Source of the DNA: Bugula neritina
Lineage: Eukaryota > Animalia > Bryozoa
DNA: 19,715 nt
Reading direction: 5' to 3'
Assembly: GCA_964035545.1 (NCBI GenBank)
Contig: CAXIUT010000058.1
Coordinates: 1-19,715, forward strand
Notes under the pieces: generated by a model
Databases searched by the model: none
The model's input: only the letters and a program-made list of their open reading frames with translations
What the model was told of the DNA's origin: nothing
Position numbers and translations under genes: made by a program
Shown: positions 77-19,715 of the stretch, in pieces
Layout: each line of letters begins with the position of its first letter
Position numbering within the stretch: position 1 is the stretch's first letter

Positions 77-120
77 TAATTTTAAGGAGTACCTATTGGT
101 TAGCGGCCTTATTCTTGCAT
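77..120 (-). other. Putative gene N-terminus truncated by the left telomere (MQEEGREPIGTPEN...)
   Basis: Minus-strand ATG at 120 after an AT-rich spacer, 72 bp past the syntaxin stop. It gives 14 relatively GC-rich codons running without TGA into the telomere. No homology support. Confidence 0.4.
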
Positions 121-192
121 AATGAATTATAGTCAAATGATATTAGTACCAATATATAAGTGATAAATAGTCAAAGTGTTTAGTTCGATAAA

Positions 193-1215
193 TCATTTAG
201 CGACTTTAAATCCCATAACAATAGCCATCGACAATATTAGAATAATAAGAATACACATACACTTCTTAGCACAAGGACTACTTGCTTTCTTATTTGCTCC
301 TTTTAAATGAACCAAACCTCTTTAAACATGACCAACGGTCTATTCAATATTAAAGTCAATTCTATCGATTAAAGAACCCTGCTCAATAACTAAATCATTC
401 AGTTCTCTATAAACAGAATTCAGTTGGTTGATTGATTTTACTAATAATGTAATTTGCTAATTTCTTTATTTATCTTATCCCATCTAAGTCTAACATACCT
501 CCATGTCATCAAAGTCATCTTTCATACGCTATCTATCTTATTGACACAGCTGAATAGCTAAGTTAGCTGATCCAGTTTCATAGGCCTTCAAACGGTCAAA
601 ATAATCTTTCTATTGTGCCCTTAAACTTCGACTTACTTCTCTTATTTCAAGAGCTAGTGATTTTTACATATTTCTATAGACTATTTATAAGTTAAGATAC
701 GTTTTTATTCAGTTTCAGAGTGGCTTTTTAGTTTTCTTATAGAACTAAGTATCTTTTAACTTTTGAGAAGGTACTTATTTAATGATTATTTACATCTACT
801 GCTTTGGCTGAATACTTTGAAATATTTTCTTAATACTTTTTAATTTATGCCTATTTAAAAGAAGACATCCTTAATTTGATCTCAGAAGTCATTTTTTTAC
901 CTGAAAAATCAAATACTTACGATAATCATCAACATGTTTTAAATGACTTTTTGCCTAATCATAAATATCAAGAGAAATAGTATTATCGGCCTCGATGCTG
1001 TTAGTAGAATTTTTAGTTGTAGCTGATAACAGATGACCAGTGTTATTGACTGTATCTAGGTTAGAATGATTTACCTTAAGATAATTAATCTTATTTTCCA
1101 ATCAGTTTGAAACTGAGTTAACGAATGCATACATATTCTTTTTTCGAGTAAGCCCTCCCTTTGCCAGGTGAAGAGCTTCAGTGCGGTTGCGAGATATACC
1201 GATGCTTCGCTTCAT
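193..1215 (-). CDS. STX16: Syntaxin-16/Tlg2-like Qa-SNARE, ~307 aa, 5 introns
   Basis: With TAR=Glu and introns 1113-1132, 1056-1074, 901-920, 774-793 and 681-700 removed, the frame is continuous. It has an N-peptide (SRNRTE), an Habc helix (NMEKSLALEIREVSRSLRAQEKDY), a SNARE motif (KERNEQITLLVKSINQLNSVYRELNDLVIEQGSLIDRIDFNIE) and a C-terminal TM helix (CMCILIILILSMAIVMGF). TGA at 193-195. Confidence 0.9.
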
Positions 1216-1381
1216 CAAATATTAAATTCTATAATATAAAATCAAACTCTAACAAACAATAAATGCTATTAACACATCCTAGAACATACTAATTATATTC
1301 ATTTACATAATTTAAATTATATCAATATTCATAAAAGATTTTACATAATAACAAATATCAATAAATATATAAAAAAGAAGA

Positions 1382-2219
1382 ATGTTCGAGTTTTTAAACA
1401 GTAAATAACATCAAAAACCTAAAAAACCTTCAATGAAGTATATGCCAGCTATGGTCTATGGACATACAAATGAATCAATACCTCAAACTCAAAACAAACA
1501 TACAGTCTACTATTCATCTCCATAGAAAAAACTACCTTTTATCCGATATTCAACCCCCATATAGTCCAATTCAAACCAATAAACACAATCTAAGCAACTA
1601 ACTGCTACAGCTCATTTCAAAAAAAATGAAACAAATAAATATTCACATCGAAACAGTCAGCCTGAATCTCAATTTCATCGTACGAGAGGATAGTTTTCAA
1701 ACTTTATGGATAATCATAAAAATTATGGAAATATTGGAATTCTACATAAATAGAAAGGAATCAAAGAAGAATATAAAAAAGGTAACATCTTTCCCAAGTG
1801 GAATGCCAGTATCAATACTGACAATAAAAGCAATCCAAATTAATCAATTTAACAGTACCTTTTTAAAATAATATAGAAAATCAAAAAAATAGTCTCTTAA
1901 GTAGTCATGTCTTGGCTCGATTAACAATGGTTCTATCCTTACTAGAAGTGTTTCAGTTAGTGTTCTTTCTAAGCCTATTGAAAGAATGTAAATAAGAAAC
2001 AGGAGGGAATAGTTTTCTTAATTAGCAAAAAAATAATTTGATATTAGACGAAAAACTAAACAATAAACCTTTGTTCTACCTAATGGTGGAGCAGCCCATG
2101 AGTTATATTTTTTAGCTAAAAATCGTAGAGAATAGAAAATGAAAACTAGAGATGAAAGATAAGAGTTAAACAAAGATTTGTAACGTTTTGAGAAGAAATT
2201 TTTAAAGAAACTAGTTTGA
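1382..2219 (+). CDS. Hypothetical basic protein, ~271 aa, 1 intron
   Basis: ATG at 1382 (MFEFLNSKEHQKPKK). Removing the 22-nt intron 1855-1876 (GTACC...TATAG) joins it to a frame ending at TGA 2217-2219 (...FEKKFLKKLV). No family recognised. Confidence 0.7.
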
Positions 2220-2288
2220 ATAAATATGTTTTTTAAAAATAAAGTTATTATCTTTACTAATATTTCATCATATTTAATATCATAAAAT

Positions 2289-3470
2289 TCAATTTTTTCC
2301 TTTTTGAATGAGCTAATGGTATTTCAAAAGAAGAGTTTTCATATAACACAAATAGTTATGATAGTTATGAACCTTTAGTGACCACTCTCTTCCTCTCTTA
2401 GCGATGGCTTATAGCTAGGCATCATTTTCTTTAGCCCAACGAAGCTTTTCATCCAGATCTGACAAATCCATTTTAATTGGGACATAGTGCTTCCAAGGTT
2501 AAGCTGAAACTGTGGCAATATCTATAAAAGTGTGAACCTTAAAAACAGCTGCACCTAGCTGTAAAAGATGAGGAAATCTTTCTGAAAAAGAAAATCCATC
2601 AATATCTATCAGTATTTTATATTGAGTTTGATATTTTTTAGGTGTTCTTGGTTTAAGAGTCAAATATTTATTCAATTTATTTTTAACCTATCTGGATAAA
2701 TCACTATAACTGGTGAATTAAACATCACAATCGCTTCTATTTTGACAAAATTTAAACAGACGAAACCGATGAGATCCATTATATACATCATCAAAGGTAG
2801 AAGCACCAGATTGAGTTCCAGTTAAGCTTCCTCTCCAAAATGCTACTAATTTTCTTTGACTCCAAGGAAGAATTTATGAAGATTTAAGTTTATCTAAATC
2901 CATTCTTGAAGAAGTAATATGAAATTGAGATGGTATTAGAATGTCATTATGACATTAGTTAATTTTATCTATTGAGAAGACTGGTATAAGTTATCTTTTT
3001 TACTTAGAATAATATTAATCATAATAATTGAAATATGTATGTCCTGGAAAAGAATAATTTTTTTAACAGTACATACGATCCTTTAGTTTACAAGTTTATT
3101 TATTACATCGTTATTCTTTTAAAAGATATGGTTTGTCCCATATATGCAAAGCAAATTAAAGATCTGGTACGTATTTAGCTACTACATTGAAAGCACAATT
3201 TAATAATTTCAAATCAATTTCATTTTAACAATTTAAAGGTACTATTTTGTGGTTTTTTATACTGACTTTACAATTATTTGAATTTAACATTTTTTTTAAC
3301 ATTTACGGAGTAATTCCATCACGAAATGGCTACAAGTCATGCTCAATTTGTTTATGATACAATGGGTTTATCACACAATTATCTATATTTTGGCTTCTTC
3401 TTAATTATTAGTTTCTTAGACTTACAAGAACTAAACAAAGAGCGAATATAATGAATAACTTTAATATCAT
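2289..3470 (-). CDS. Glycosyltransferase family 90 (CAP10/KDELC/POGLUT-like), copy A, ~393 aa
   Basis: Intronless frame with an N-terminal signal peptide (MILKLFIIFALCLVLVS). Motifs: QIEHDLEPF, VPDLEF, PVFS...HNDILIP, PWSQRKLVAFWRGS, YKILIDIDGFSFSERF, PWKHYVPIKMDLSDLDEKLRWAKEND. Confidence 0.88.
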
Positions 3471-3521
3471 GTGATTTAATTATAATTAAATAATGCCTTT
3501 GTTTTTGCAAAAATATGTACA

Positions 3522-5168
3522 TCATTTCTTCTTTTTCTTCTTTTTATTATCAACCATATCAGGATTACTTGGTAACTGCTTTGTTGGAAACTATCGAGCT
3601 GTCTCTGAAAAGAAATCTTCATTCTCAGGAAGACATAGTCCTCTTGAAAGAGCTTTGATGTTCACATTTACTTTCACTTTTGTCAACTTTTATTTTATCT
3701 TACCAACTTCTTCTAATTGACAAAGTCTCTCTTTTGAATGACTATGGTTACGAATGATTTCTGAAAGACCTCTACGTCTAGATGTGTACTGACATAGAGA
3801 AGGTGCTGATTATCTTTCCTCTTGATCAGCTAAGTTCAGAACTTTTGAGAATTTATTTCTCAGAGAAGATAACCTATCTCTTCTGATTGTTTTTTCGTTC
3901 AAATCAAAGTTACCAGATGTTTTCAATCCTGGAAGAGTTAGATCAAATTAATTAGTTCTGTTTCTTGTTCTAGCAGTGGTAGCAAATCCATATTTAATTT
4001 AATCTTGAGGTGCTATGCGCTCTTAAGGAGGAGCAGCTTCTTTACTAAAACTAAATTATGCTTTAAATTTCATATTTTATAACTTATTTTGCATTTATTT
4101 CGAAATAGTAGCCTTCTTTTTAGCCCATTCATGTGCTATTTCTATGTTATTTACATCTTCTCTTTGTCTCTTTAATATATCCTGATATCTTCTTACATAT
4201 CGCAAATCCATATTTCTTTCTTCTTTAGCTTCATTGCCCTGATAAAATTGATATCCATCTTTATATTTTTTATCATTATCAGCCTTTATTGCATCTATAT
4301 ATAATGGGTTCTTTGGACGAAGTTTATCAGGAACCTCTTAAGGCTATTCCTCTTCAGGCTACTAAGGTTCTTCACCCATACCTAGATCAACTCCTGGTTG
4401 CTATGGTTGTTAATTCCCTCCTTCTTCAGCAGGTTGTCCTTCTATCTTTTAGCCTTCAACTGCAGGAGGCTTTTCTTATCCTGGAATAACTTCAGGTTAT
4501 TATATCTGTGGTTCTTCATACTTGGGTGGTTTAGGATAAAGAACTCTTTGAGGTTTTCCTTATTATCTTTGATTATCTGAAGGTGCTAAATTAAGAATAT
4601 TCAAAGTTTTTACTTTGTATTATCTAAGTCTGCGAGTTGGATTTTAAAATTATTAGTGAGTAGTTCTCCAATTTTGTCTGAAAGGTTAGATAATTCTTTC
4701 AATTTGATAGAAAGGAATATCAAGCTATTCTTCTTCTACTTATTCCTCTTTTTCAGGCATATTTTTAAGTGCATCTCTATACTCTTTGCTCATTTAATAG
4801 CGAATATTTCCTTGATCATATCGTTGTTTGACAAGTCTTTGTTGCTATTTGTACCACGCTACCATGGATTCAAGACCAGTAATTTGGTCTTCTCGAGTTT
4901 ATATTTGAGCTAAATCTGAAAGCATTGAATGAACTCTTTGATAAGAAAGTATTTCGTAAGGATCTTTCACTAATTCTCTATCGACTCGACTATTGAAATC
5001 TTTCAGTTGGGACACTAAAAAACGAAAACCGTCCTGGTTCTTTAAGAAAGGATTAGAGGTGAGAGCTATGTTGAGACCAAATGATTTTGGCTTCTTCTCA
5101 GTAGCTATTTCTTTGTAGTATTAACGAAATTTTTGTACAACTTCCTCTTTTGATAGTGGCTTTTTCAT
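3522..5168 (-). CDS. Hypothetical protein, ~548 aa, with a central Glu/Pro-rich linker and poly-Lys C-terminus
   Basis: Frame of 549 codons from ATG 5168 (MKKPLSKEEVVQKF) to TGA 3522-3524 with no internal TGA. Contains GEEPEEPEEEEPEEVP and ends LPSNPDMVDNKKKKKKK. Confidence 0.88.
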
Positions 5169-5189
5169 TAAATTTATTGATTATAGCTA

Positions 5190-6048
5190 TCAAGCATCAA
5201 ATTCTTAGCTAGAAAGTGGTAAAAACATTACCTTTCCTCCTCCTCCCTTTGCAACAGATTGCAATATTTCCAAATATCTGATTTGCATGGCCGCCTTTGA
5301 GTTCAAAATGTCAGCTGCCTGATGCATCAATTTAGCACTCTTGACATCAGCCTCAGCAGAAATGATCTTGGCCTTAGATAGTCTTTCTGTCTTGGATGTC
5401 ATTGAAAGATCTCTTTGTAGGTCTGCATTGATCATCATATCTTTGATAAAAATCTGTTCCACATAAATACCTTCATAACATAAGACTTACCCCATTTGTT
5501 AGTTTTTTGATAAACATATTCTTCAATGATATCAGCTATTTCCTGTCTTTTCTAAAGTAAATCTTGAAGAGTGTTTTATCCGCAAATGGTTCTTAGGGTA
5601 GCATAAGTCACCTCAGCCACAGATTGGACGATGTTGGCAATTTTATAATGTGCAGTTTTAGGTTCAATGACTCGATAGTAAACACAAGTATCAATGTCAA
5701 CTGTAATATTGTCTTTTGTCAGAATTTTTTGCCTATCAAGATCTAAAACTCTAGATGAAACATATTTTACGTTGTCAAAAGCGATATTCCACTCAAGCTT
5801 TCAGTACAAGGGTTAATATAGTGAAGCCCCGGTTCTAAGTCATCAATCCAACGTCCAAATCGTTATTTGAGTCCAATACTTCCTTGTCTAACTTACCTAT
5901 AAGGGTAAGGACACCAGCAGCAACAACAGGGTAGCCATGAACGAAGACAACCAGTACAACTTCCACAACTATCGAGGACAGATTCATAGCAAGTTGATTC
6001 CCTATCATCTTAAAATACATTTTCCTCTTCCTTTTGACTCCTCCTCAT
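5190..6048 (-). CDS. Stomatin / SPFH (band 7) family protein, ~272 aa, 2 introns
   Basis: Introns 5751-5770 and 5471-5490 (20 nt each). Motifs: GLKERFGRW...LEPGLHYINP, ILTKDNITVDIDTCVYYRV, TLRTICGENTLQDLLEKRQEI, WGIYVEQIFIKD, AKIISAEAD, AAMQIRYLEIL. Cys-rich N-terminus. The frame reads through the TAA at 5205 to TGA 5190-5192. Confidence 0.95.
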
Positions 6049-6054
6049 AATCAA

Positions 6055-6630
6055 ATGAAAAAAATAGATTAAATAGTTTAAACTAAATAATGGCTGTAGT
6101 TATTTCATTAGATGAATTAATATCATATGATAACATTGTAAGAGATTGGTATATACCATTATATTCGTTAAATGAGTTTGATTGAGTCATCAACCATTTT
6201 ACAACCTCATAAAAATGTCAGCTTTTTGAACAGTAGTTAATCATCAGGTAGTGCTCCTCGAAGTCGTTCAAAAGGTATCTCTCTTTCTAAAGAACTAAAA
6301 TCAAAACATCGGTAAAATTCTCCTTCTTTTATAAAAGTAACTCAAAACCAAAAGAGAACTCCATTCGTCGAAAAAAGATAAATAAAGTTAATCATCAAAG
6401 CTCGAGAAGGTAGTCCTTCATTGGTAGATCATAAAAAAGTACCAAATAAGTAAAATATATAAAGCTATTAAAGTCAACCATCAAGGTCTTTTATGAATTC
6501 TATCTCAAACAATGGAATATATTTGAATATTCTTCAACCAAGGACGAATTGCTACTTTGAAAATAGACAAGGAGTCAGAAATGAGAGAGGAGGGTATCGA
6601 AAAGTTTGTCCTTCGATTCAATTAAACTGA
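6055..6630 (+). CDS. Hypothetical protein, up to 191 aa
   Basis: TGA-free frame from ATG 6055 (MKKIDEIVETKEWLELF) to TGA 6628-6630. The start could instead be the in-frame ATG at 6112 or 6127. It is Ser/basic-rich with no family recognised. Confidence 0.65.
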
Positions 6631-6659
6631 TCTAAATTATATTTCTAAATCATAGTAAA

Positions 6660-7873
6660 ATGGATTCCATAGCTGACAGACTAAACAAGAATAATTAATA
6701 GAGTTGCGATGCCTTTCTTTCCTAAATACTTATCTCTCAAAACAAAAACCTCGCTTTATCATCAAAAAAGTATCAAGTCTACATGGTTGAAGATTCCATT
6801 CCTCCTTCAGATTTTCCAGCAACTCAAACTTTCACTCCTCTTCCAGCAACTGTATAATTTAGTAGAATAGTTGCTAACGTGATAACATCATTAACAACCA
6901 GTTATTTCAAACAATTGAGAATTCAGAAGTAAAGATCTATTAATGTAGAGAAAGATCAAGTGAGAATATAGTAGAAAAATGGACTAAATATCTGAATCTT
7001 TATGAAAACAAGGCTCTAGTTTCAGATTGCTTTTGGTTAGCTATTTGTAAATTTTTTCATCAAGGAAAATATGAACTTTCTGAAGCTTATCTTGAAAAAA
7101 GAATAGCTAAAAATTACATTGGTTTATTTCTATCGATCCCTTAAAAGAAAGAAAACGATATATTTTTCAAATAGTATTTTAATACTTTGGCCCAATCAGT
7201 TTTTTATTCATTTTTCTATGCATTTCCAAAAAGTAGATCTAAATTCGATAATAACTTAAAAGACAAATTACTCACTACTTTTAGTAAAGTTTTTACAGGA
7301 GTATAAATCAGTAATAAAAAGCATTATTACTAAAAATGGACTTTAGATCTTGGAACTGGTAATATTTTAATTAAAAAGAATAGAAAAATATAAAGTGGAA
7401 ATTAATAAAATATGACAATTAATACTACTCGTACTGAATTAGGAAAAAGTTTTTAAAAAATGAAAAAAAGATAAATTTTACCAATAAGATATAGTCCAAT
7501 AGTTGAACTCTTCCTCAAATCAAATAGATATAAAACAAGAAATTACGTCTCTTAGTTCAAAATGAAATACACACAAGTTGATAAAACTCAACATCTAAAG
7601 TAATAAAAATTTGCACAGTATAAAGAAGAGGCAAAAAAGATATTAGAGTGGTCATAAAATCAGAAAAATGATGATGATACTAAGAAAAAACAATTATAAT
7701 CTTAAATAAAAGGTTTGAAAAGAGAAACTATCAATCACCACAAAAGACTTGATAGAAGAAAAGTATAAGAATTAGAAAGAGGTGCTCACTAATACGCCAA
7801 TTACTTAGTTAGTATGCTAAATGCAGGAATCACTATGACTTCTCTTGGAGTTGTTAGAAAAAATATTAGTTGA
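6660..7873 (+). CDS. FAM227 family (FWWh domain) protein, ~397 aa, 1 intron
   Basis: Intron 6929-6948 (20 nt). The segment DCFWLAICKFF...RIAKNYIGLFLSIP...DIFFKEYFNTLAQSVFYSFFYAFPKSRSKFDNNLK and a later SPIV match the FAM227A/B pattern as I recall it. Confidence 0.8.
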
Positions 7874-7923
7874 TATTTCTTAATTAGATTTTCATAAACT
7901 ATTTTTATATAATCTTTTATTCA

Positions 7924-8773
7924 ATGCAACAAAAAATTTAAGAAATAACTCAAATGCAAATGCTCATGGCTGGTAGTTCTAGCCTAACTCCTGGACAGCA
8001 AACAATAGCTGCTTTACACTCTATCAACCTGCAACACAAATTGGAATGCATTGATGATAATAATCAAGTATGCTAATTTCCAGAAAAATGGAAATAACAA
8101 GCAGATGGCTCATATACCTTCAAATATAAAAACAAATCAAAAGGAACTATCGTTAAATTCAAAATGACAGAAGAAGACAAAAGAGTCATTGTAGTTTTTG
8201 GATAGTAAGGATCAAAATAGACATTCAGAGTCACAGTTAACTCAACTTCAAGCATGCAAAATATCATTCAAGATTATTCTTTTACCCTAAAACAATATAT
8301 TGGAAAAGTTAATATTCCTCCTTAAACTTATCCAATCAATAATACTCAATATCAATCAAATAACAGTCAAAATAATTCAAGATTAGGAATTACTACAGAA
8401 AAGATTCAACCAGTTTACCCTCCAAAAAATCTTATCAACACAGGAAATACTCAAAATCCTTTCGGACAAGAATAATATGTAGGACCAAATAGTAATATTT
8501 TTACAAACCAAAATTATCAGAAACCTCAATCTGGACTCATGATTCCCCCTGGAGCTAGATATGATCCTGTCGATCCATTCGACAACCCTCTTCTTGAAAG
8601 AAATCAACCAGAAGATTTTAGAGGGTTTGATTAATTTGGAGCTCCCCTAGGAAGACCTTTCCCTCATCAAAAAGGACCTTTTGGTAACAATCCATTTCAA
8701 GGACCTCGAGGAGGATTCGGAGGAGGATTTGGGAGGAGGATTTAATGGAGGTTTTGGAGGAGGAATGATCTGA
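7924..8773 (+). CDS. PSMF1: Proteasome inhibitor PI31 (PSMF1/Fub1-like), ~282 aa, with an apparent 1-nt insertion near the 3' end
   Basis: FP-domain-like N-terminus (AALHSI...CEFPEKW...YTFKY), YVGPNSNIF and the hallmark IPPGARYDPVDP, then a Pro/Gly-rich tail. An extra G at 8731-8733 must be skipped to read GGGFNGGFGGGMI-TGA (8771-8773). Confidence 0.85.
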
Positions 8774-8799
8774 CTAGTTGTTATGTTATCTATTTATTA

Positions 8800-10272
8800 A
8801 TGAGTTAAGCTATATAGTTTAACAATAATGATGCAGTTCATGGGGTTGGGGGTTGGGGTTGGGGTTGGGGTTGGGGTTGGGGTTGGGGTTGGGGGTTGGG
8901 GTTGGGGTTGGGGTTGGGGGTTGGGGTTGGGGCTGAGGGTACAGGTCCTCTCGACTCAAAATTTCGTATTAGTTGTCCAACCTGCCGTAAAAATACTATC
9001 ACTCTCAACATTCAAAATCTAGTTAATAAAGAAAACGAAAAGTTATTGTTTGTAAACATGGAGAGCTCAGAACTAAGCTAAGAAGAACTAGAGCAACAAT
9101 TTGGAGAGGGAAAAGGTCGAATCAGTTAAAGTCGTCTCAGAAAAATGTCCTACACTTAGAGGAGAAGTAGTGTATATGCATAAAGAAGAACTCCTGAAGT
9201 TCTTGAAAGAAACAGTAGAGGCTACGATTCTCGAGGAGCTCCTAGTAGAAATAAACAAGCTGAAACACTCTAAGTTAAATGTAGCCTTCATAAAGAAGCA
9301 TTGATGTTTTACTGTGAGCAAGAAACAAATGTAATGTGTATGCAATGTATGTATAAACACATGAAATAACAAAAAAATCATAATGTTTGCTCCTTAACTG
9401 ATGCCTTACCAACCATTGCCAAGATAAACCTAGAGTATAAAACAGAAGCAAAGCATCGCATTTAAGATATAGAGAAAAATCTTACAGTCTGTAAAGGAAA
9501 TAAGAGTAGAATATAACAGGCATATCAAATACATGAACAACTTGTTGGGCAATAGTTTAGATAATTAGAAAAACTTATTCAAAAAAAAGAACAATAAAAT
9601 AGATAGTATTTATAAAAAGTATTCAAGAGGAAATAGTAATAAATAGGAGAACAAATTAATTAACTTAATTATATTAAAAGTTGTCTCAAATAACATTTTT
9701 AGTTCAATATTGATAATTCTAGTGCACATGTATATTTTTTCAACGCTTTCAACCTACTTAGAACTGCTGTCAGCAAGTATACTATCAATTATAAACAAAT
9801 CAAAAAGGAAGAGTTCTTCTGCTTTGATAAATATGCTTCTCTGGAAGATTTTTCATCTCTACTTGAAAAATTTTATAAACCCAGAGAAGGTGGACGCTAA
9901 AGTAAAACAGCAAATATTCGTAAAGATTAAAGTAATGGACCTTCAAGAGCTTCATAAAAGGGTCAGACTCTCAAAATAAAGCAACAATTTTACTAAGAAG
10001 CCAAAAAGAAACTCGAAAAGCTGAATAAAATGGAACATTAACATACTGGAAAGAAGAAGAGTTCGAGATAAGAATATTTGCAAAACTTTTTCATCTAAGA
10101 AATGGGACGTTAACTCTAAAACAGTTATAACCGACCTCCACCAGGAAGTGCTGTGGCATCCTATCGAAAAAGTTCAGCAAGTTAGTATGTAGAGAGAAAA
10201 GCTGGGCAAAAGACTATGACCCCTACAAGGATAACACCTACTCCAACAAATCCAAAATCACGCAAGAAATGA
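8800..10272 (+). CDS. RING(partial)-B-box-coiled-coil (TRIM-like) protein, interrupted in frame by the telomeric tract
   Basis: From 8932 the frame reads AEGTGPLDSKFRISCPTCR (last RING CxxC), a B-box (CSLHKEALMFYCEQETNVMCMQCMYKH...HNVCSL) and a coiled coil (GQEFRELEKL) to TGA 10270-10272. ATG 8800 (MSEAIEFNNNDAVH) is in the same frame. The 3' part is secure, while the 8800 start is inferred. Confidence 0.8.
8841..8932 (+). repeat. Internal telomeric tract (TTGGGG)n, ~92 nt
   Basis: About 15 G4T2 units with three G5 variants, in right-end orientation. It is followed directly by coding sequence, with no opposing C4A2 tract. Confidence 0.97.
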
Positions 10273-10297
10273 TAAGAAGTATTATGTGTAACAAAAA

Positions 10298-12646
10298 TCA
10301 TTTTAAAGTCTTGATAATCTCATTGAGATTTGAATATTCAGCTTATTTGACTGACCACAGATGATCAATTCCATCATTAACTTGTCGACTTTTACGTAGT
10401 AAGCGCTTCATTTATATGTTATCTTGCTCCATAAAAGCTTTTTTTTGCTGAAGTTGAGCATGTTGATTTCCTAATTCAGTCAAACTGTCAAGTTTTTATA
10501 CAAGACTACTTATTTTCAAACTATTCTATGCCTGAATACCCTCAAGTCTTTCTTCTTGTTCTTTACGATACACATGAAGAGTTTAATCTTTTTATTTAAG
10601 AAGATGGTTTAGTTGATTACTTATTCTTTCAACTTCTTTTGTTTTTTAAACTAACTTACTTTCAAGATGAACTTTTTATCCCATTCTTTGATTTATTTAT
10701 TGAGATGTTTGTTTCTTTACCCTGTCTAATTATGCCTGAAGTCGATGAATTTCAGAAAAGTATTATGTTTTAGCTAAAGAAAGTTTTAAATCTGTTTCTT
10801 CTTTACATTTAAAAGATTTTATTTACTCTTCAGCTAGACTTCTTTTAAGTACTTTGATTTATTCTTCATACTCAAATATTTGATTTCTATGTTAATCAAT
10901 TAATTTTGATATATTTACTTTAGTCTAAGCTAGCTATTCTTCTCTAAGTTAAATTTGTTGAGATTTTTTCATTACTAAATTTTTTTATTCATTTTGATGT
11001 TGAGTTAAATTTTCATTTAAAAGACGAATTCTTTATAATTAATAGTTGCTTTTATGAGCTTCATTTTAGGCTTTTTGCATAGCTTATTTTAATCTTTTTA
11101 GTTATCCTTGAGCTTCTTATTTTAATCTTCTTTCAAAAGACATTTGATCTTTAATCTTTTTGATATCTTAAACAAAATATAACTTCTACATTTATTATTC
11201 TTCATTATTTCTTTAAATCTATCTTAATTTTTATTATAATTCTTCTTCTCTATCCTTTATCTTTTTAAGTTTTTACTACAACTCTGGCTAAGATATATTT
11301 ACATGATCTACCTTTTGTACTTGATTATTGTTGATTTATTTTCTAAGAGAGGCTACTTCTGACAATAATTGTTGATCAGGTTTTACCTGAAGATTTGATA
11401 TTTTTTCTAGTAAAAGAGAAAATACTTCAGATTGATCTTTTTATTCTTCGCTATCATCAGATTTAAGACTTTATATTTGTTGTTTCAGTTACTATGACTC
11501 CTGTTTTAATTTCTTTATCTAAAACTACAATGTACTAATATATTATTTATCTTTTTTTTCTTGTTTAATCCATTTAGATTGTATTTAATTTTTTTAATCT
11601 TAATCTTTATTTGTTCTATTCAACAACAGCTTATATCTTTAATCTTTAATTTAAATTTATTGAAGTAATTTTTGTATTTATTCTCTTTTATCTAAAAGAA
11701 TTTGTTCTTCAGTTGAAGATAACCTTCTTTGAATCAATGCTATTTCATCTTTAAATGATCTTTCCTGCATTTAAAGCTACATCTTATATTTCTTTGTATC
11801 CAGCTAAAGTGTACAATATTTATTCTTTTCATAATATATCTATTCTTACAAAGCTTTAATTCGCTCGTCTTTTTTCATAATTTGAATGTGACATATCTTT
11901 ATTTATCCCTCTATTGTACCTGTTGAGTTACTAAATTATTTTATCTTCTGCTTCAGTGATTCACACTATCTTTTACTATCTTCGATCTGTTACTTTAAAC
12001 CTTAAATATCTTAAATATATTTCTTAGTTGTATGCTATCGCTATTTTTCGTTCATTTGAATGATCTATAGTTTGTTTCTCAACTCTAAGTTTATTTTTTT
12101 AAGTTCAATTTAGTTACCCAATAATTCTTAAATTTTTTTCATACTGTTATTAAGAGTAATTTCCATTTGTTTTCGCTCCAAGGCTACCATTTGTACTTCT
12201 CTATGTTGTGATTTTTTTCTTGTCCTTTCTATTTTGCTACTATAAGAAGATGAACGAGCATCTGATCTACTCTTAGAAGAACCATTACTTTAATTACTAT
12301 TAGTTGGATATCGATGATGAGTAAGTATATTTGACTCAAGTTCTGTATTTTTAAGAACCTAATATTACCTTTTGAGCTCACTAAGAATTTAAATTTGGTT
12401 AGATTTCAATTTTTTAAATCCAGTTTACAAACCAGTCACTCTACTATAACTAACTGTAGGACGAGATGTTTATTATTCTCTGTTCTAGTGAGGCAGATAT
12501 TAATGATGATATTGATTGCTTAAGACTTGATGAGAATAATTCTCGATATGAGGATCAATAGGATTTCCCCAAGTCATGTGTTAGTAGTTATCTTCAGATC
12601 GATGATATTGGTTTTCATAAGGACTAGATAGAGGCTGTGAACTCAT
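10298..12646 (-). CDS. Long coiled-coil protein, ~782 aa
   Basis: Frame of 783 codons from ATG 12646 (MSSQPLSSPYENQYH) to TGA 10298-10300 with no internal TGA. Low-complexity N-terminus followed by E/K/Q/L-rich heptads. No specific family recognised. Confidence 0.9.
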
Positions 12647-12828
12647 TCAAATTTTATTCTGTTTTATTGATAAAACTATAGTTATACAAAACAACTCAAA
12701 TTATCATCATAAACTTAAAATCATCTATTTATAAAATCTTTAGCCATGAATATGATATATTTTTAATTAAATGATAAAACAAAGGGATTAAATTTGAATA
12801 CTGATGAGAAGTTAATTGTCAGTCTGCT

Positions 12829-14346
12829 ATGTTGACTATATTATTTTTATTTGAATTAGAAGATGAGTGTGCTAACACAAAAACTATAAAATGTAGTTTA
12901 GAAATTATTCAGGCTTCAAAACTATTTCATAGTCATAGCTTTAAAAAAAGTCTATAAGCATATCAGGATTGTATTGACTTTTGCTATAAGACCCAAGAGG
13001 ATCAATCTGTTATCTTCAATATTCTTACCACCAGAGCCAATCTTTAATACATTCTTGGAAATTATTAAGAAGCATTAGCTACTCTTAAAATTGTACTTTC
13101 AAAGGATCCTTTCCACTTTTTAGCTTTACTTCGAAGAAGTCAAGTATATAAGAAGGTATAGTCAACACTTATGTAGAAAAATAAATTAAACAAAGCATTG
13201 GGAGATATATAAAAAATATATGTCTTTTGTCCAGATAACTTACAAATATCTGCTTTCAAAGTAGAAATCGAACATATGATTCTCAAACAAGGAAGTAAAA
13301 TCCAATCTTCTGATTCAGAAGATTCTGTAGATAATGAAGAAGAAGAATTAAGTCTTAATTTTATGAATCTTAAACTAATAGACAGAAAATCAAGTGACCT
13401 ATCAGCATCAAAACCAAGAAAAAGTCAAGTTACTATTTTAGGAGATTCCACTTTTTAATATAAACAAGAAGATAGTTGGAACAATATCTAAGATGATGAT
13501 AAAGAAGAAGTAAATTTCAAAGCTATTAGAACTCAAAAATAGATTTAAATTGATAACTAAGATTAATAATAAACTGAACCTTAAATTCAAATAAAAATCT
13601 TAGCTCCTATGAAAAATAAAAAAAGTATTCTCAAGAACAGAGGCAGTGAAATATTTGTTAGTCCAATAGATGAAAATTAAAAGAAACAATAATTATATTT
13701 AGGAAGAAAAAGTCAACTTCTAACTAAACTAAAAAATATTGATGGAAAAGTAATCCAAACAATTGATCTTTAAAATAGTCAAAAAGAATTAAAAGAAGTG
13801 CTATTTAGAAAAAGTGTAAGTAATATTACTCCTCTAGTATCAGTTTTCAATTAAACTGATACTGCTTGTTTTAATAAATTGACTGTAGGAGGAAGTGGTA
13901 GAAAATCATGTATTAAAAAATCTTCTTTCTAGCTAGCAGGAACAACTTTCCCCTTAAGATTGTCTAAATTTTAATCAATAAATGCTGGAAAAATCGATGG
14001 AAAACTTCTAAATCATCGAAATAGAAATTCTATTGAACATAAAAATGAAAATGAATAAAATTCTGAATCAGATAACGAATCCAGTTCTCATAATATATTT
14101 GGAAATACAGGTCCTATAATAGGAGATGGCATAATCCACAATCTTGGGTTGCCTAAAGAAGATCCAAATGAGCCTCAATCAGGTAGTAAATCTACAAAGC
14201 TAAATAAGAAGCATTCAATATTGAAGAAGAATTCAATGACACCAATAACAAAGAAGATGTCAATAAAGGAAAGTAAAGATCTACCTGTTTAATCAGGATT
14301 CAAGATGAAATCTAAGAAAAGTGTAGTCTTTAATTGCACTATGTGA
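12829..14346 (+). CDS. TPR-repeat protein with a long disordered tail, ~498 aa, at least 1 intron; 5' end uncertain
   Basis: Three TPR-like repeats (ASKLFHSHSFKKSLEAYQDCI; TRANLEYILGNYEEALATLKIVLSKDP; ALLRRSQVYKK|KNKLNKALGDIEKIYVFCPDN) with a 21-nt intron at 13156-13176. TGA at 14344-14346. An alternative start at 12746 would need a 29-nt GTT-donor intron at 12831-12859. Confidence 0.8.
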
Positions 14347-14416
14347 TCTCAATATATCAATCATTGTGAACAATAACTAAAATAAAAATAGATTAATGAT
14401 TAACAATAAGAATAAG

Positions 14417-15234
14417 TCAATTAGATATATTAACCTCCACATTTTCTATTGGAGAAAAACTATTACTTCCCACCTGAGACTGTGGTTCAGATACACTACT
14501 ATGACTCTCATAAAAAGACTCACTTCCTCTCACAGCATAATATGCATAGTTATGCTCAATATTTCCTTGATTCATATGCGAAGTCACCCGTAAACTCACC
14601 ATCTTCGATTAAATTTTTGTATCACTAACTGCCACAATATTAATCTCACAAGGTGGCTTCAATATCTCAACCACCTATTTCTAACTATACCTCCTAAAGA
14701 AATCAAACTCCTCTCCCATCAAAAGAGGATGCTGACCTGGCTTATTCGTATACAATACTCCACAAAATGGTTCAGGTTCTATTCTAAGAGTTATTTCAGG
14801 ATTGCTAGTATTATAGCGAATGACTTTTTGATCCGAATCTAGAAGTTCCTAATCTATTTGAATAGCTGGGACTTTAACTCTACGGTTGCCTTTGAGAGAT
14901 TATTTGCAGAAAGAAGAGCTATATTTCAAACTAGTATTTGCAAGATCATAAGGACGATAAAAAAAAGAACATTTAAGTACTTATTGAGCCATATTGATAT
15001 CCTGATTAAAGCTTAATGATAAAGAAATTACTTAAATTTATCATACTACAGTCTATCAATAATGGCATTTATGCGCCTATATGATTTAGCAAGCAACTTC
15101 TGAGCTCCTCTCGATTTACTGTTAATTCCAGAGATTACTTCATGAGCTTATCTCTGATATTTAAGTTTAATGTTTTATGAATCTTCCTCTACCTGACCAT
15201 TGATATTGCTTAACTCCTATTATTCTGAAATCAT
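14417..15234 (-). CDS. Hypothetical protein, ~265 aa, 1 intron
   Basis: ATG at 15234 (MISEEEELSNING). The 20-nt intron 15012-15031 restores the frame into the supplied 14417-14602 ORF. TGA at 14417-14419. Confidence 0.75.
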
Positions 15235-15258
15235 TATCTTATTATTATTAACTCTCTA

Positions 15259-16551
15259 ATGCTTCTTTCTAAAATCAACAAAATCAACATTTCCATCAAA
15301 CACAACCTCACAAATAACTCATCGCTATATATGTTCTCCCGCCAAAATAACAAAAAACACTTCTTTAACATCAAAGACAAACAACCCGAAAAGTCAATCA
15401 AAGCCATCCTACCCAAACAATATCCAACCAATCTCGTAGATGGATCTCCAATGATAGAAAGAGGAAGACCAGTTCATTTCCTATCTCCTAGAGATGAAAT
15501 AGCATAAATTAAGATGATGTCAAATGATGATGCAATAATATCTACCTTATACGATGGTGAATGGAAAAGTCCTTAAAATGCTTATAAATTAAATGTTGGG
15601 TTAATAGGCCCTATCAATTCAGGTAAATCATAACTTCTATCAAAACTTAGTCATAAAATAAGTGCTGTATCACCCAAAAGTCATACCACTAGTGAAGTAC
15701 TTCATTCATTCAAATCTTTTCAAGTAGAATCAGATAAAGGAATCAAAAATATACAACTTAAATATTTCGATACTCCAGGATTAGCTCATCATAAAACTGG
15801 ATTCATATCAAAAGGTTGGAAAGTTTTAGGAGATATAGATTTTTCTTTATTGATTATTGATAGTTCTAAAAAATTTGATGATCTTCTGCAAGAATCCATC
15901 AACAGAATTTAAAAACATAGAAAATATTAACTTTTTATGAAAGCCTTAGTTCTAAATAAAATTGATCTTGTATAAAACAAAAGAAAATTTCATGGTTTAA
16001 TCGCTTAAATATAAAAATATGGAAAATTTGATAAAATATTTTATACTTCAGCATTAACTGGATATGGAGTCAAAGACATCTAAAACTATTTATTATAATT
16101 TGCTAAAGAAGGGTAGTGGTAGTGTCCAAAATAGACCAAAACAGATAGTTCTGAACTGTAAATAATCTAATAACTATTCAAATAGTCACTATTTCATAGA
16201 ACATATTATCAAATACCTCATAGCAGTTTAATATAATGTTAATCAATAGCATAAAAATCAAATGGAGTTCATTTTTTTCAGTTCAGAGTGATGGTAGAAG
16301 ACTAAAATGTTCAAAGAATGGTAATTGGGAAAAAAGGAAGGAATATCAATTGGATGAGAGATCACTTTAAATCAAATTATGCCAAACTAAAAGGAGTATA
16401 AGTATAAGTTCATGTGAGAGTAGTAATTCGGAAGAAGAGACTTTTACGTGAAACAAGTTAGTTGGAAAGTTCATATTACAAGCAATCAAGAGGACAGTAG
16501 ATGAAGATGATAAAGTAATAATTATAGAAGGAGGGAAAGTTTATAAGATGA
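15259..16551 (+). CDS. era: Era-family GTPase (ERAL1-like, probably mitochondrial), ~430 aa
   Basis: G1 VGLIGPINSGKS, SAVSPKSHTT, G3 DTPG, G4 NKID, G5 TSALTGYG, and KH-domain VIGKKGRNI. The basic, acid-poor N-terminal extension resembles a mitochondrial presequence. TGA at 16549-16551. Confidence 0.92.
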
Positions 16552-16588
16552 TATTTATGAGTTGTTATAATTGCTATTTTCTATTTCT

Positions 16589-17930
16589 ATGGCTATGTAT
16601 TCTCCAGAAATTGTCAAAACTTTATCCAATCAAGTTCAAACTCTCACTCCACTAAGAGAATCTTTCCACAAACTTCAACAATATTACCTCCAACTCACTC
16701 AGGACTTTAACCATCTCCTCACCACTACCGTATCAAAATTAACATTTAGGATCTCTCAGAAAAATAACTCAAAAACAATTTAGCATACTTTGAAGAAGTT
16801 AATCGATCTCTAGAGAGGGAATTCGGAGTGTGTGGAGAAGATCTTCGACAAATGGAATGTGAACTTGCTAGAATACAAATGGAAAAAAATCAAAATTGTG
16901 CCCAATCTGATGCCCTTAAAAGTCGAGAAGTACTCGAACTAGAACATAAGTCCTCTTTGGAAGGTACTCATTGTTTAATAAAGATAAAAAGAAAGATCTA
17001 ATCGATCAGAATGAAAAGTTATCATTCAGCGTAGGAAAATATAAAGAAATGGTTCATAACATCGAACTGGCAATCAAAAGCAAATAATATGAAAACAGAG
17101 ATATAGAGAGATAAATCAAGAAAATGGAATTAGTTAACCTTAAAATAGCATAGCTTAACAATAACACATAAACTAATATTGATAACATACACAAAGACAA
17201 TTAGATGACAGTGAATAAAATATATTAACAAGAATGCAAATTAGAAACTTATAATAAGTTAATTTAAGTCAAAGAAAAACAAAATAAAGAAAGCTTGCAA
17301 AATCTTATTGATAAAACTTAAGAATTAGAACAACTTAAACATAGAAGACAATACATCGATAAACTTATTTAATCATAACTCTTAGAACAAAGAGAACTTA
17401 ACAAAACCCAAGGATAGCTTTAGTCTATTCTAGCAGTCAAAAATGATAAACTCATGTCCATTGAACAATAAAATAAAGAGTATGGTAAACTTATTGAAGA
17501 ATAGAAAAAACAACAAATGAAGAATGAAGATTAACTTATCAAACTTACTAATTATCTCCAAACTCTAGTTCTTACCAACTAAAGTCTCTTCAAATAACTA
17601 TAAAAAAGCTGTTCCAAAGACAAAGAAGTCCAAGTAATGCTGAGTGATAAGCTTTAAAGACTTTTAACGATGAATTAAAAAATAACTTAAAATGAACTTC
17701 TAAATCGATGCGATAGAAGTTCAGTTTCTCGTGTTGCCTTATTCAAGGAAAGAAGTGTTTCTCCTAAAAGAAATGAAAAGGAAATGACAACAATAAAAGC
17801 CAAGTTGATTGAAAAATCTAATTTATTGAAAGGTCAGGATTCCATTAAATAAAAAATATTAAATAGAAGTCAGGAAATGTCTTCCACCTGGGGAAGTCGT
17901 TTAAAAGAAAACTGCTGTTATGATCTTTGA
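16589..17930 (+). CDS. Coiled-coil hypothetical protein, ~433 aa, 2 introns
   Basis: ATG at 16589 (MAMYSPEIVKTL). The 20-nt introns 16730-16749 and 16964-16983 give a continuous E/K/L-rich frame to TGA 17928-17930. Confidence 0.8.
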
Positions 17931-18012
17931 TCCCTTATATCACATTATACAATACTAAATTAACAAATAATAATAACAATATATTTTAATTTGATAGTCT
18001 TAATCATGAAAT

Positions 18013-19197
18013 TCAATTTTTTCCTTTTTGAATGAGCTAATGGTATTTCAAAAGAAGAGTTTTCATATAACACAAATAGTTATGATAGTTATGAACCTTT
18101 AGTGACCACTCTCTTCCTCTTTTAGCGATGGCTTATAGCTAGGCATCATTTTCTTTAGCCCAACGAAGCTTTTCATCGAGATCTGACAAATCCATTTTAA
18201 TTGGGACATAGTGTTTCCAAGGTTAAGCTGGGATAGTTCCAATATCTATAAAAGTATGAACCTTAAAAACAGCTGCACCTAGTTTTAATAGATACGGGAA
18301 TCGTTGTGAAAAAGAAGCTCCATCAATATCTATCAGTATTTTAAATTGATCTTGATTTTCCATGGGAGTTATTTTAGCAGGAGGAAATTATACCATCAAT
18401 TTGGTAAAAAGATGTTTTGGTCGATCACCATAACTAGTGAATTGTGCATCACAGTCATTCCTATTCGAACAAAATTTAACTAAACGAAATCGATGAGACT
18501 TATTATAAATTTAATCGAAAGTGTCAGGTCTTTGAGGTGCAGTTAAACTTCCTCTCCAAAAAGCAACAGATTTTCTTTAATTCCAAGGACAATTTTACTT
18601 CAAAGGTTTACCTACATCGAATCGAGACAAATATAAATGAAACTGAGAAGGTGCAAGAATATCATTATGACACTAATTGATCTTAGATATTGAAAATACT
18701 GGGAGAATTTATCTTTTTTATTAAGAAGAATATTAAGTATTATGATCAAAATACATATGACTTGGAAATGAATAATTTTTTTAACAATATTGACGATCTC
18801 TTAGTTTACAGATAGGTTTATTACACCTTTATTCTTTTAAAAAATATTTTAAAAGAAATGGCATGTCCAATATATGAAAAATAAACTCAAGATCTGGCAC
18901 ATATCTAGCTACTACCTTAAAAGCCTATTTTGAATTTCTATATCCATTCGAATTTTAACAATTAGAATGTTACAATTTGTGATCTTTTATTGTTACTTTA
19001 CAGTTAATTTAATTTTATCTTCTTAATATTTTTGTTAACATTTATTGAGTGATTCCATCTCGAAATGGCTAGAAGTCATGCTCGATTTGCTTGAGATAGG
19101 ATGGATCTAAATCACATTTACTCAAATCTTAGCTCTTTTTTAGTTATTAGTTTGCAAAAACAGTCAGAAAAAGAGAGAATATAATGAAAAAATTCAT
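18013..19197 (-). CDS. Glycosyltransferase family 90 (CAP10/KDELC/POGLUT-like), copy B, ~394 aa
   Basis: Full-length paralogue of 2289-3470. Signal peptide MNFFIIFSLFLTVFA, plus VPDLEF, AFWRGS, IDIDGASFSQRF and PWKHYVPIKMDLSDL. TGA at 18013-18015. Confidence 0.88.
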
Positions 19198-19588
19198 TTA
19201 AAATAATTATAAACGTCAATTAATCAATAAAACTTGAACATCAATTTAATTAAACTATCTATTTCAATAGTAGTCAATTAGAAATATTTTAAAAGTACTT
19301 GATACGATAGATATTTCATAAAATAAATATAAATTATCATATTAGATATTATCATATTTTTAGAATCAAAAGAATTTAGTGATAATACTGTCATTAAAAA
19401 ATTCATCGAAATGTTTTAAATATTTTTATTACTAATTTAAAAATAATTATGTTTGATTTTATTATCTTTCAAGTCTAGAAATATATTCATCTAAATCTGT
19501 TTTAAAGATAAATAATATTAAAATAAAACTACTTAGATAAAATCTAATGAAATATTTAATAGATATTTAATATTTTTATGAAAAATAA

Positions 19589-19715
19589 TGGGGTTGGGGT
19601 TGGGGTTGGGGTTGGGGTTGGGGTTGGGGTTGGGGTTGGGGTTGGGGTTGGGGGGGTTGGGGTTGGGGTTGGGGTTGGGGTTGGGGTTGGGGTTGGGGTT
19701 GGGGTTGGGGTTGGG
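19589..19715. repeat. Right telomere, (TTGGGG)n
   Basis: Tandem G4T2 repeats to the contig end, with one G7 variant. Confidence 0.98.

Follow-up and report, generated by a model that had tools for sequence, protein, structure and literature searches.

The window analysed here is the complete contig CAXIUT010000058.1 (19,715 nucleotides, nt) of assembly GCA_964035545.1, filed under the bryozoan Bugula neritina; it is a single macronuclear chromosome, ~19.7 kb long, of a ciliate that uses the peritrich genetic code, and the question considered is how its telomeres are placed relative to its genes. Three telomere tracts are present (n = 3; Table 1), namely C4A2 repeats at the left end, G4T2 repeats at the right end and an internal G4T2 tract of the same polarity as the latter, and no further G4T2 runs occur in the window. 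The internal tract very probably represents the end of an alternative, shorter chromosome form that was overlaid on the consensus, and at both the left end and the internal site the telomere appears to be added within the first codons of the next gene. An initial annotation had proposed that all three junctions lie 42–44 nt past a telomere-facing ATG, as if breakage were measured from gene starts. The genes themselves are tightly packed, with tandem intergenic spacers of 21–57 bp. Relatives used for comparison were reached through a stomatin piece of the window; among 366 TAA or TAG codons aligned between the window and the relatives L011, L202 and L081, 223 face glutamate, 42 aspartate and 14 glutamine, and the nuclear code, judged by this alignment, is thus the peritrich code (table 30), in which TAA and TAG encode glutamate and TGA is the sole stop.

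Table 1. Features of the window that bear on the placement of its three telomere tracts.
Feature	Position	Strand	Remarks
Left terminal telomere, C4A2 repeats	1–76
Probable first 44 nt of next gene, cut by telomere	77–120	-	ATG at 118–120
Spacer, 72 nt, from stop of last gene to ATG 120	121–192	-
Last complete gene, 3′ end toward telomere	193–669	-	coiled-coil protein with C-terminal membrane anchor
PI31-like gene, 3′ end toward internal tract	7924–8773	+	extra G at 8731 breaks the frame
Spacer/leader with ATG 8800	8774–8830	+	ATG 8800 in frame with downstream gene only in the 115-letter version
Probable true start of RING/B-box gene: ATG 8831 (or 8828)	8831–8841	+	11–14 nt before telomere addition site
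Internal G4T2 tract, 91 nt	8842–8932	+	probable alternative telomere addition site
Rest of RING/B-box gene, 446 codons	8932–10272	+	resumes at residues AEG, GCT at 8932
GT90-like gene, 5′ end toward right telomere	18013–19197	-	paralog of 2289–3470; Glyco_transf_90 match weak
Leader, 392 nt, 14.5% G+C	19198–19589	+	ATG 19547 (43 nt from junction) and ATG 19578 (12 nt)
Right terminal telomere, G4T2 repeats	19590–19715		one run of seven G

At the internal site, the telomere repeats begin at 8842, inside a locus that continues across the site in the contigs of three sequencing runs (X1, X2 and X4) and in two relatives. Contigs of four runs were aligned to positions 7000–11000, the comparison being masked at 8836–8946, and X1, X2 and X4 each contribute one Logan contig that covers both flanks (14.8 kb, 12.9 kb and 795 nt, respectively; X4 is from another study, and 34 differences are listed for its contig). 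Each of these contigs has 116 letters between 8831 and 8947, where the window has 115 (8832–8946). A Logan contig cannot hold a repeated 31-mer; the tract region of the window contains 23 kinds of repeated 31-mer, as a near-perfect G4T2 run of ~90 nt would, and the 116 letters must therefore be non-repetitive and not a G4T2 tract. The tract is very probably the telomere of a shorter form of ~8.9 kb that ends at 8841, merged over a nearly equal length of read-through sequence, and what it hides is probably ~92 nt of unique sequence encoding the first half of a RING finger. The read-through form is observed in the contigs, and the shorter form is best read from the tract in the consensus. That this consensus was built from long reads and carries homopolymer errors is indicated by position 8731, where the window reads GGG and the contigs of X1, X2 and X4 read GG; removal of the extra G joins the open reading frame (ORF) 7924–8730 to the stop at 8771–8773, completing a gene whose match to PI31_Prot_C (25.9 bits) falls just under the cut-off. 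The run of seven G in the right telomere is a further sign of an error-prone consensus.

The two relatives that span the site, L011 from Logan and L202 from ENA, share ~70% nt identity with the window and are collinear with it on both flanks of the tract, L011 matching 6762–8749 and 8944–10431 and L202 matching 3521–14102 in several blocks; a chimera at the internal tract is ruled out by this collinearity. The two flanks are separated by 164 nt in L011 and by 155 nt in L202, and telomere repeats are absent from both sequences over their whole length. In these relatives, the gene begins 30–40 nt past the PI31-like stop, and its first 34 codons carry the cysteine and histidine pattern C-x2-C, C-x-H-x2-C-x2-C; directly after them stands AEGVGPLD..CP.CRK, the second half of the RING finger, which is where the gene resumes in the window. 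Its B-box is matched at 9274–9366 with 25.9 bits against a cut-off of 24.1. Among the first 49 codons after the tract, 23 are identical to those of L011, 22 differ synonymously and 4 non-synonymously; because of this excess of synonymous changes, the RING/B-box gene is, to judge from the aligned codons, under purifying selection, and no copy would work without the first half of the finger. In run X9 (65 million letters), coverage of the locus is confined to 7930–8646 and 9385–9535 with none between, a pattern that resembles an RNA library; if X9 is one, the PI31-like and RING/B-box genes would both be expressed.

Alternatively, the tract could be physically present in the chromosome as an interstitial telomere, arising for instance when a healed end is rejoined to the distal fragment or when telomerase adds repeats at a repaired break. 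This would be compatible with the masking of the inter-flank letters of the Logan contigs and with the share of sampled words (0.97 for X1 and X2 on positions 6900–10900), a value equally compatible with an overlay and with a tract that is real but carries homopolymer errors. It is nonetheless very improbable: contigs of three runs span the site at full length although repeated 31-mers are impossible in them, strong purifying selection on the second half of the RING finger would scarcely be expected if the first half were lost for good, and a replacement of nearly equal length (115 against 116 letters) is what an overlay in the consensus gives. Moreover, the AT-rich junctions of short-read metagenome contigs include no interstitial tract of this kind, only palindromic G4T2/C4A2 artefacts. 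As an observation in its own right, the JGI loci of AT-rich ciliates in which G4T2 runs straight into C4A2 (L087, L090, L094, L095, L111, L133 and others) are probably assembly artefacts at chromosome ends. Use of the telomere pattern in viral contigs was abandoned, the 64 loci retrieved consisting almost entirely of phage or virus DNA that carries short Gly/Val-type repeats, and an exact search of metagenome contigs with the 36-mer from 8803–8838 returned no match.

The probable overlay of the shorter form on the read-through form has a direct consequence for the start codon of the interrupted gene. ATG 8800, from which the initial annotation measured its distance, is in frame with AEG when 115 letters separate the flanks; the 116 letters of the three runs shift it out of that frame. 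At 116 letters, ATG 8828 and ATG 8831 are in frame, and from ATG 8831 there are 34 codons up to AEG, the number that L011 and L202 have; ATG 8831 is favoured because the relatives' N-terminus of 34 codons is thereby restored. The start is in all likelihood 8831 or 8828, so that telomere addition takes place 11–14 nt after the start codon and not 42 nt after it, which does not support the proposal of a fixed ruler of 42–44 nt from the gene start. MAFFT alignments of the short stubs with the relatives are ambiguous past the first 6–9 nt.

At the left end, the last complete gene, which by eye we take to be syntaxin-like, shares 68% nt identity with its counterpart in L011; Pfam searches on short pieces of it gave no match. 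Between its stop and the telomere lies a trailer of 116 nt with a single ATG, ATG 120. In L011, L206 and L207, the same upstream gene is followed by one that starts with ATGCAAGAG, 38 nt past the stop, and its window counterpart, ATGCAAGAA, lies 72 nt past the stop; ATGCAAGA is the start common to the window stub and to that gene in the three relatives. Across data sets, the ortholog of the cut gene has 87–97% amino acid identity, and in L205 its frame runs for more than 350 codons without a stop. Because the start is shared and is followed in the relatives by a long conserved ORF, the left end most probably cuts 44 nt into a real next gene, as far as orthology can tell. In L011 (12118–12161), L206 and L207, an ATG that overlaps the upstream stop (AAATGA) is in frame with ATGCAAGAG; in the window, the corresponding positions are in different frames. 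The source of L206 (ENA ERZ937806) is an activated-sludge metagenome (DRR046817); peritrichs are typical of this habitat.

The initial annotation had further held that a gene cut by a telomere would survive intact on an overlapping chromosome isoform. At the internal site this agrees with the contigs of X1, X2 and X4, which read through; at the left end it is the cut itself that the evidence bears out.

The right end is of another kind, as the telomere there faces the 5′ end of a gene. The relatives L081 and L077 have a La-domain gene next after the coiled-coil gene; in the window, a GT90-like paralog of opposite sense lies between. The right stub was considered as the start of that La-domain gene and gained no support from the comparison with L081 and L077, 19 of 42 nt being identical by eye and three residues shared. 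ATG 19547 may be a gene start past a divergent promoter, or it may be there by chance. Separately, the GT90-like paralogs of the window (2279–3461 and 18003–19194) are 77% identical overall and 98–99% identical across ~200 nt at their 3′ ends, which looks like recent gene conversion, and neither was found in the relatives' collinear contigs.

The distances on which the initial annotation was based are exact: 44 nt for the minus-strand ATG with its A at 120, 42 nt for ATG 8800 and 43 nt for ATG 19547, with the preceding stops at 72 bp (TGA 193–195, minus strand) and 26 bp (TGA 8771–8773), as it had said. The 14 TGA-free codons that it read from each ATG into the telomere are a length expected by chance. 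Further telomere-facing ATGs stand 11 and 14 nt from the internal junction and 12 nt from the right one. When the flanks were shuffled, the coincidence of ATGs proved uncommon: a 3-nt window with a telomere-facing ATG common to the three 100-nt flanks arose in 0.9% of mononucleotide shuffles and in 1.6% of dinucleotide shuffles. When all 64 trinucleotides are considered, a mean of 1.87 share such a window in shuffled flanks, and the real flanks have 2 (ATG and TTT). A set of 74 AT-rich G4T2 junctions from JGI metagenome contigs of other ciliates has no excess of telomere-facing ATGs at 39–50 nt, with 3 ATGs in the 39–44 nt bin and 7 in the 45–50 nt bin against a mean of ~7.

A ruler by which breakage is measured from the gene start, that is from a transcription start site (TSS) or the edge of the +1 nucleosome, so that telomeres fall 42–44 nt past the start codon of the cut gene, would account for distances of 44, 42 and 43 nt and for their shuffle P of 0.009–0.016; orthology marks the left ATG as a real gene start, ATGAGT at 8800 is like the relatives' start, and the 349 nt that separate ATG 19197 (minus strand) from ATG 19547 would be a fitting length for a divergent promoter. 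It is nevertheless improbable, as ATG 8800 leaves the frame at 116 letters and ATG 8831 restores the N-terminus, the right ATG has no support from an ortholog (its stub matching the start of the next gene in L081 no better than stated above), and no peak at this distance is seen among the 74 junctions from other G4T2 ciliates. The equal spacing of 42–44 nt is most likely a coincidence, since one ATG of the three is probably not a start codon and another is tied to no gene. What stands of the idea of ends anchored at gene starts is that the left and internal sites both cut the 5′ end of the next gene; a fixed distance from the ATG is unsupported.

Known sequence signals for breakage were also sought, and the absence of a shared motif, already remarked in the initial annotation, holds for the last 45 nt of the three flanks, which give none that is convincing. 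The Tetrahymena chromosome breakage sequence of 15 bp (Cbs), searched with up to 3 mismatches, has 3 matches in the window against 1.6 expected by chance, none of them near a junction; since Cbs is normally eliminated from the macronucleus, its absence from the flanks is weak evidence. The Euplotes counterpart, E-Cbs, carries its TTGAA core 17 bp inward from the point of telomere addition, and neither TTGAA nor TTCAA occurs in any of the three 100-nt flanks. The motif ATGAWTATYA was tried and set aside, as it stands at no fixed place; the nearest instance, ATGAATTATA, has 2 mismatches to it and is located 46 nt from the left junction, on the inward strand.

Taken as a whole, the explanation that we favour, with a probability of roughly 0.6, is that an alternative end at 8841 is overlaid in the consensus, that ends lie at gene boundaries and that their equal spacing from ATGs is coincidental. 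As for mechanism, which we hold to be slightly better than an even bet, breakage and telomere healing would occur at the boundaries between genes and would depend on no fixed sequence signal, in a manner similar to Paramecium. The 3′ end of the upstream gene would have to be kept, with 116 and 68 nt from stop to telomere at the left and internal sites; the spacers would be too short to hold a chromosome end, and because they are so short the break would land in the first codons of the next gene, which would stay usable on molecules unbroken at that site. Several points weigh against this explanation. The uniqueness of the 116 letters depends on how Logan contigs are built, and 8836–8946 was masked in the comparison; an abundant shorter form in X1, X2 and X4 might be expected to branch at 8841 and break the contigs, yet they are unbroken. 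ATGAGT at 8800 resembles the ATGAGT and ATGAGC with which the gene starts in L202 and L011, and the ATG coincidence has a nominal P of 0.01–0.016. The mechanism, finally, draws on only two informative sites.

Gene starts could also be irrelevant altogether: where a chromosome ends would depend only on a minimum length of trailer behind the last gene, or on random healing, and the three ATGs, even the left one, would be incidental. Trailers of 68 and 116 nt resemble those of other small ciliate chromosomes, shuffled flanks yield about two coinciding trinucleotides by chance, and a minimum-trailer rule with spacers of 20–60 bp would also place sites in first codons. Neotelomeres of Paramecium arise inside genes and bear little relation to features (PMC13076228). 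On the other hand, both testable sites fall no more than 15 codons into the next gene, an outcome that would be rare for random sites in a mostly coding genome, and we regard this alternative as unlikely. Conversely, breakage and telomere addition might be aimed at the first ~15 codons of genes by way of the transcription start or the first nucleosome, which is distinctly unlikely; if true, many genes would exist as a cut stub at a chromosome end together with an intact copy on the read-through form, unlike the intergenic rule of Oxytricha.

A few observations concern the window at large. The ORFs 7002–7415 and 7412–7873 overlap by 4 nt (ATGA). Exact look-up of the window ORFs 15259–15504 and 1626–1868 matched no record, and the hits to three queries included no protein from this organism. 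The loci L001–L010, L203 and L204 from JGI and L077–L080 from Logan are more distant, have other gene orders and are without telomere tracts, which makes them uninformative on the junctions.

If the favoured explanation is right, the internal telomere tracts of the same polarity in this genome are most likely alternative ends merged into a long-read consensus and probably not DNA joined through telomeres, and each merged tract hides ~90 nt of real sequence. Were ends to fall in the first codons of the next gene, with that gene retained on unbroken molecules, throughout the genome, the frequency of breakage at each site would be linked to how many copies of the adjoining genes exist and how strongly they are expressed. 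A literature search on the peritrich macronuclear genome turned up no chromosome or telomere data, and the window affords a first look at the placement of ends in a ciliate with the peritrich code and multi-gene chromosomes of 9–20 kb. As in the Cbs system of Tetrahymena and the E-Cbs system of Euplotes, programmed fragmentation would be followed by de novo telomere addition; unlike in them, no such motif stands near the junctions. In a study of Blepharisma minichromosomes, telomere-bearing reads reportedly map inside assembled somatic contigs, which recalls the internal tract, in a ciliate of another class and with another telomere repeat; we know of no link between telomere addition and gene starts in Blepharisma. 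Alternative fragmentation in Oxytricha trifallax likewise leaves several genes on one small chromosome, and its strongly supported sites show a 58-fold enrichment between coding sequences (PMC3558436; PMC6937825); in contrast to that species, the two testable sites here lie in the first codons of the next gene (44 nt at the left end, 11 or 42 nt at the internal site), the telomere is G4T2 and not G4T4, and the code is that of peritrichs. There is also a likeness to Paramecium, in which telomeres of the G4T2 type are added without a strict sequence signal, sites fall within genes, and fragmented and unfragmented molecules coexist (PMC13076228). There, the sites are spread across kilobases, increase with clonal age and lie on nucleosome cores (PMC13076228), whereas in the present chromosome, one of a set of only ~9–20 kb, the site is sharp enough to enter the consensus.

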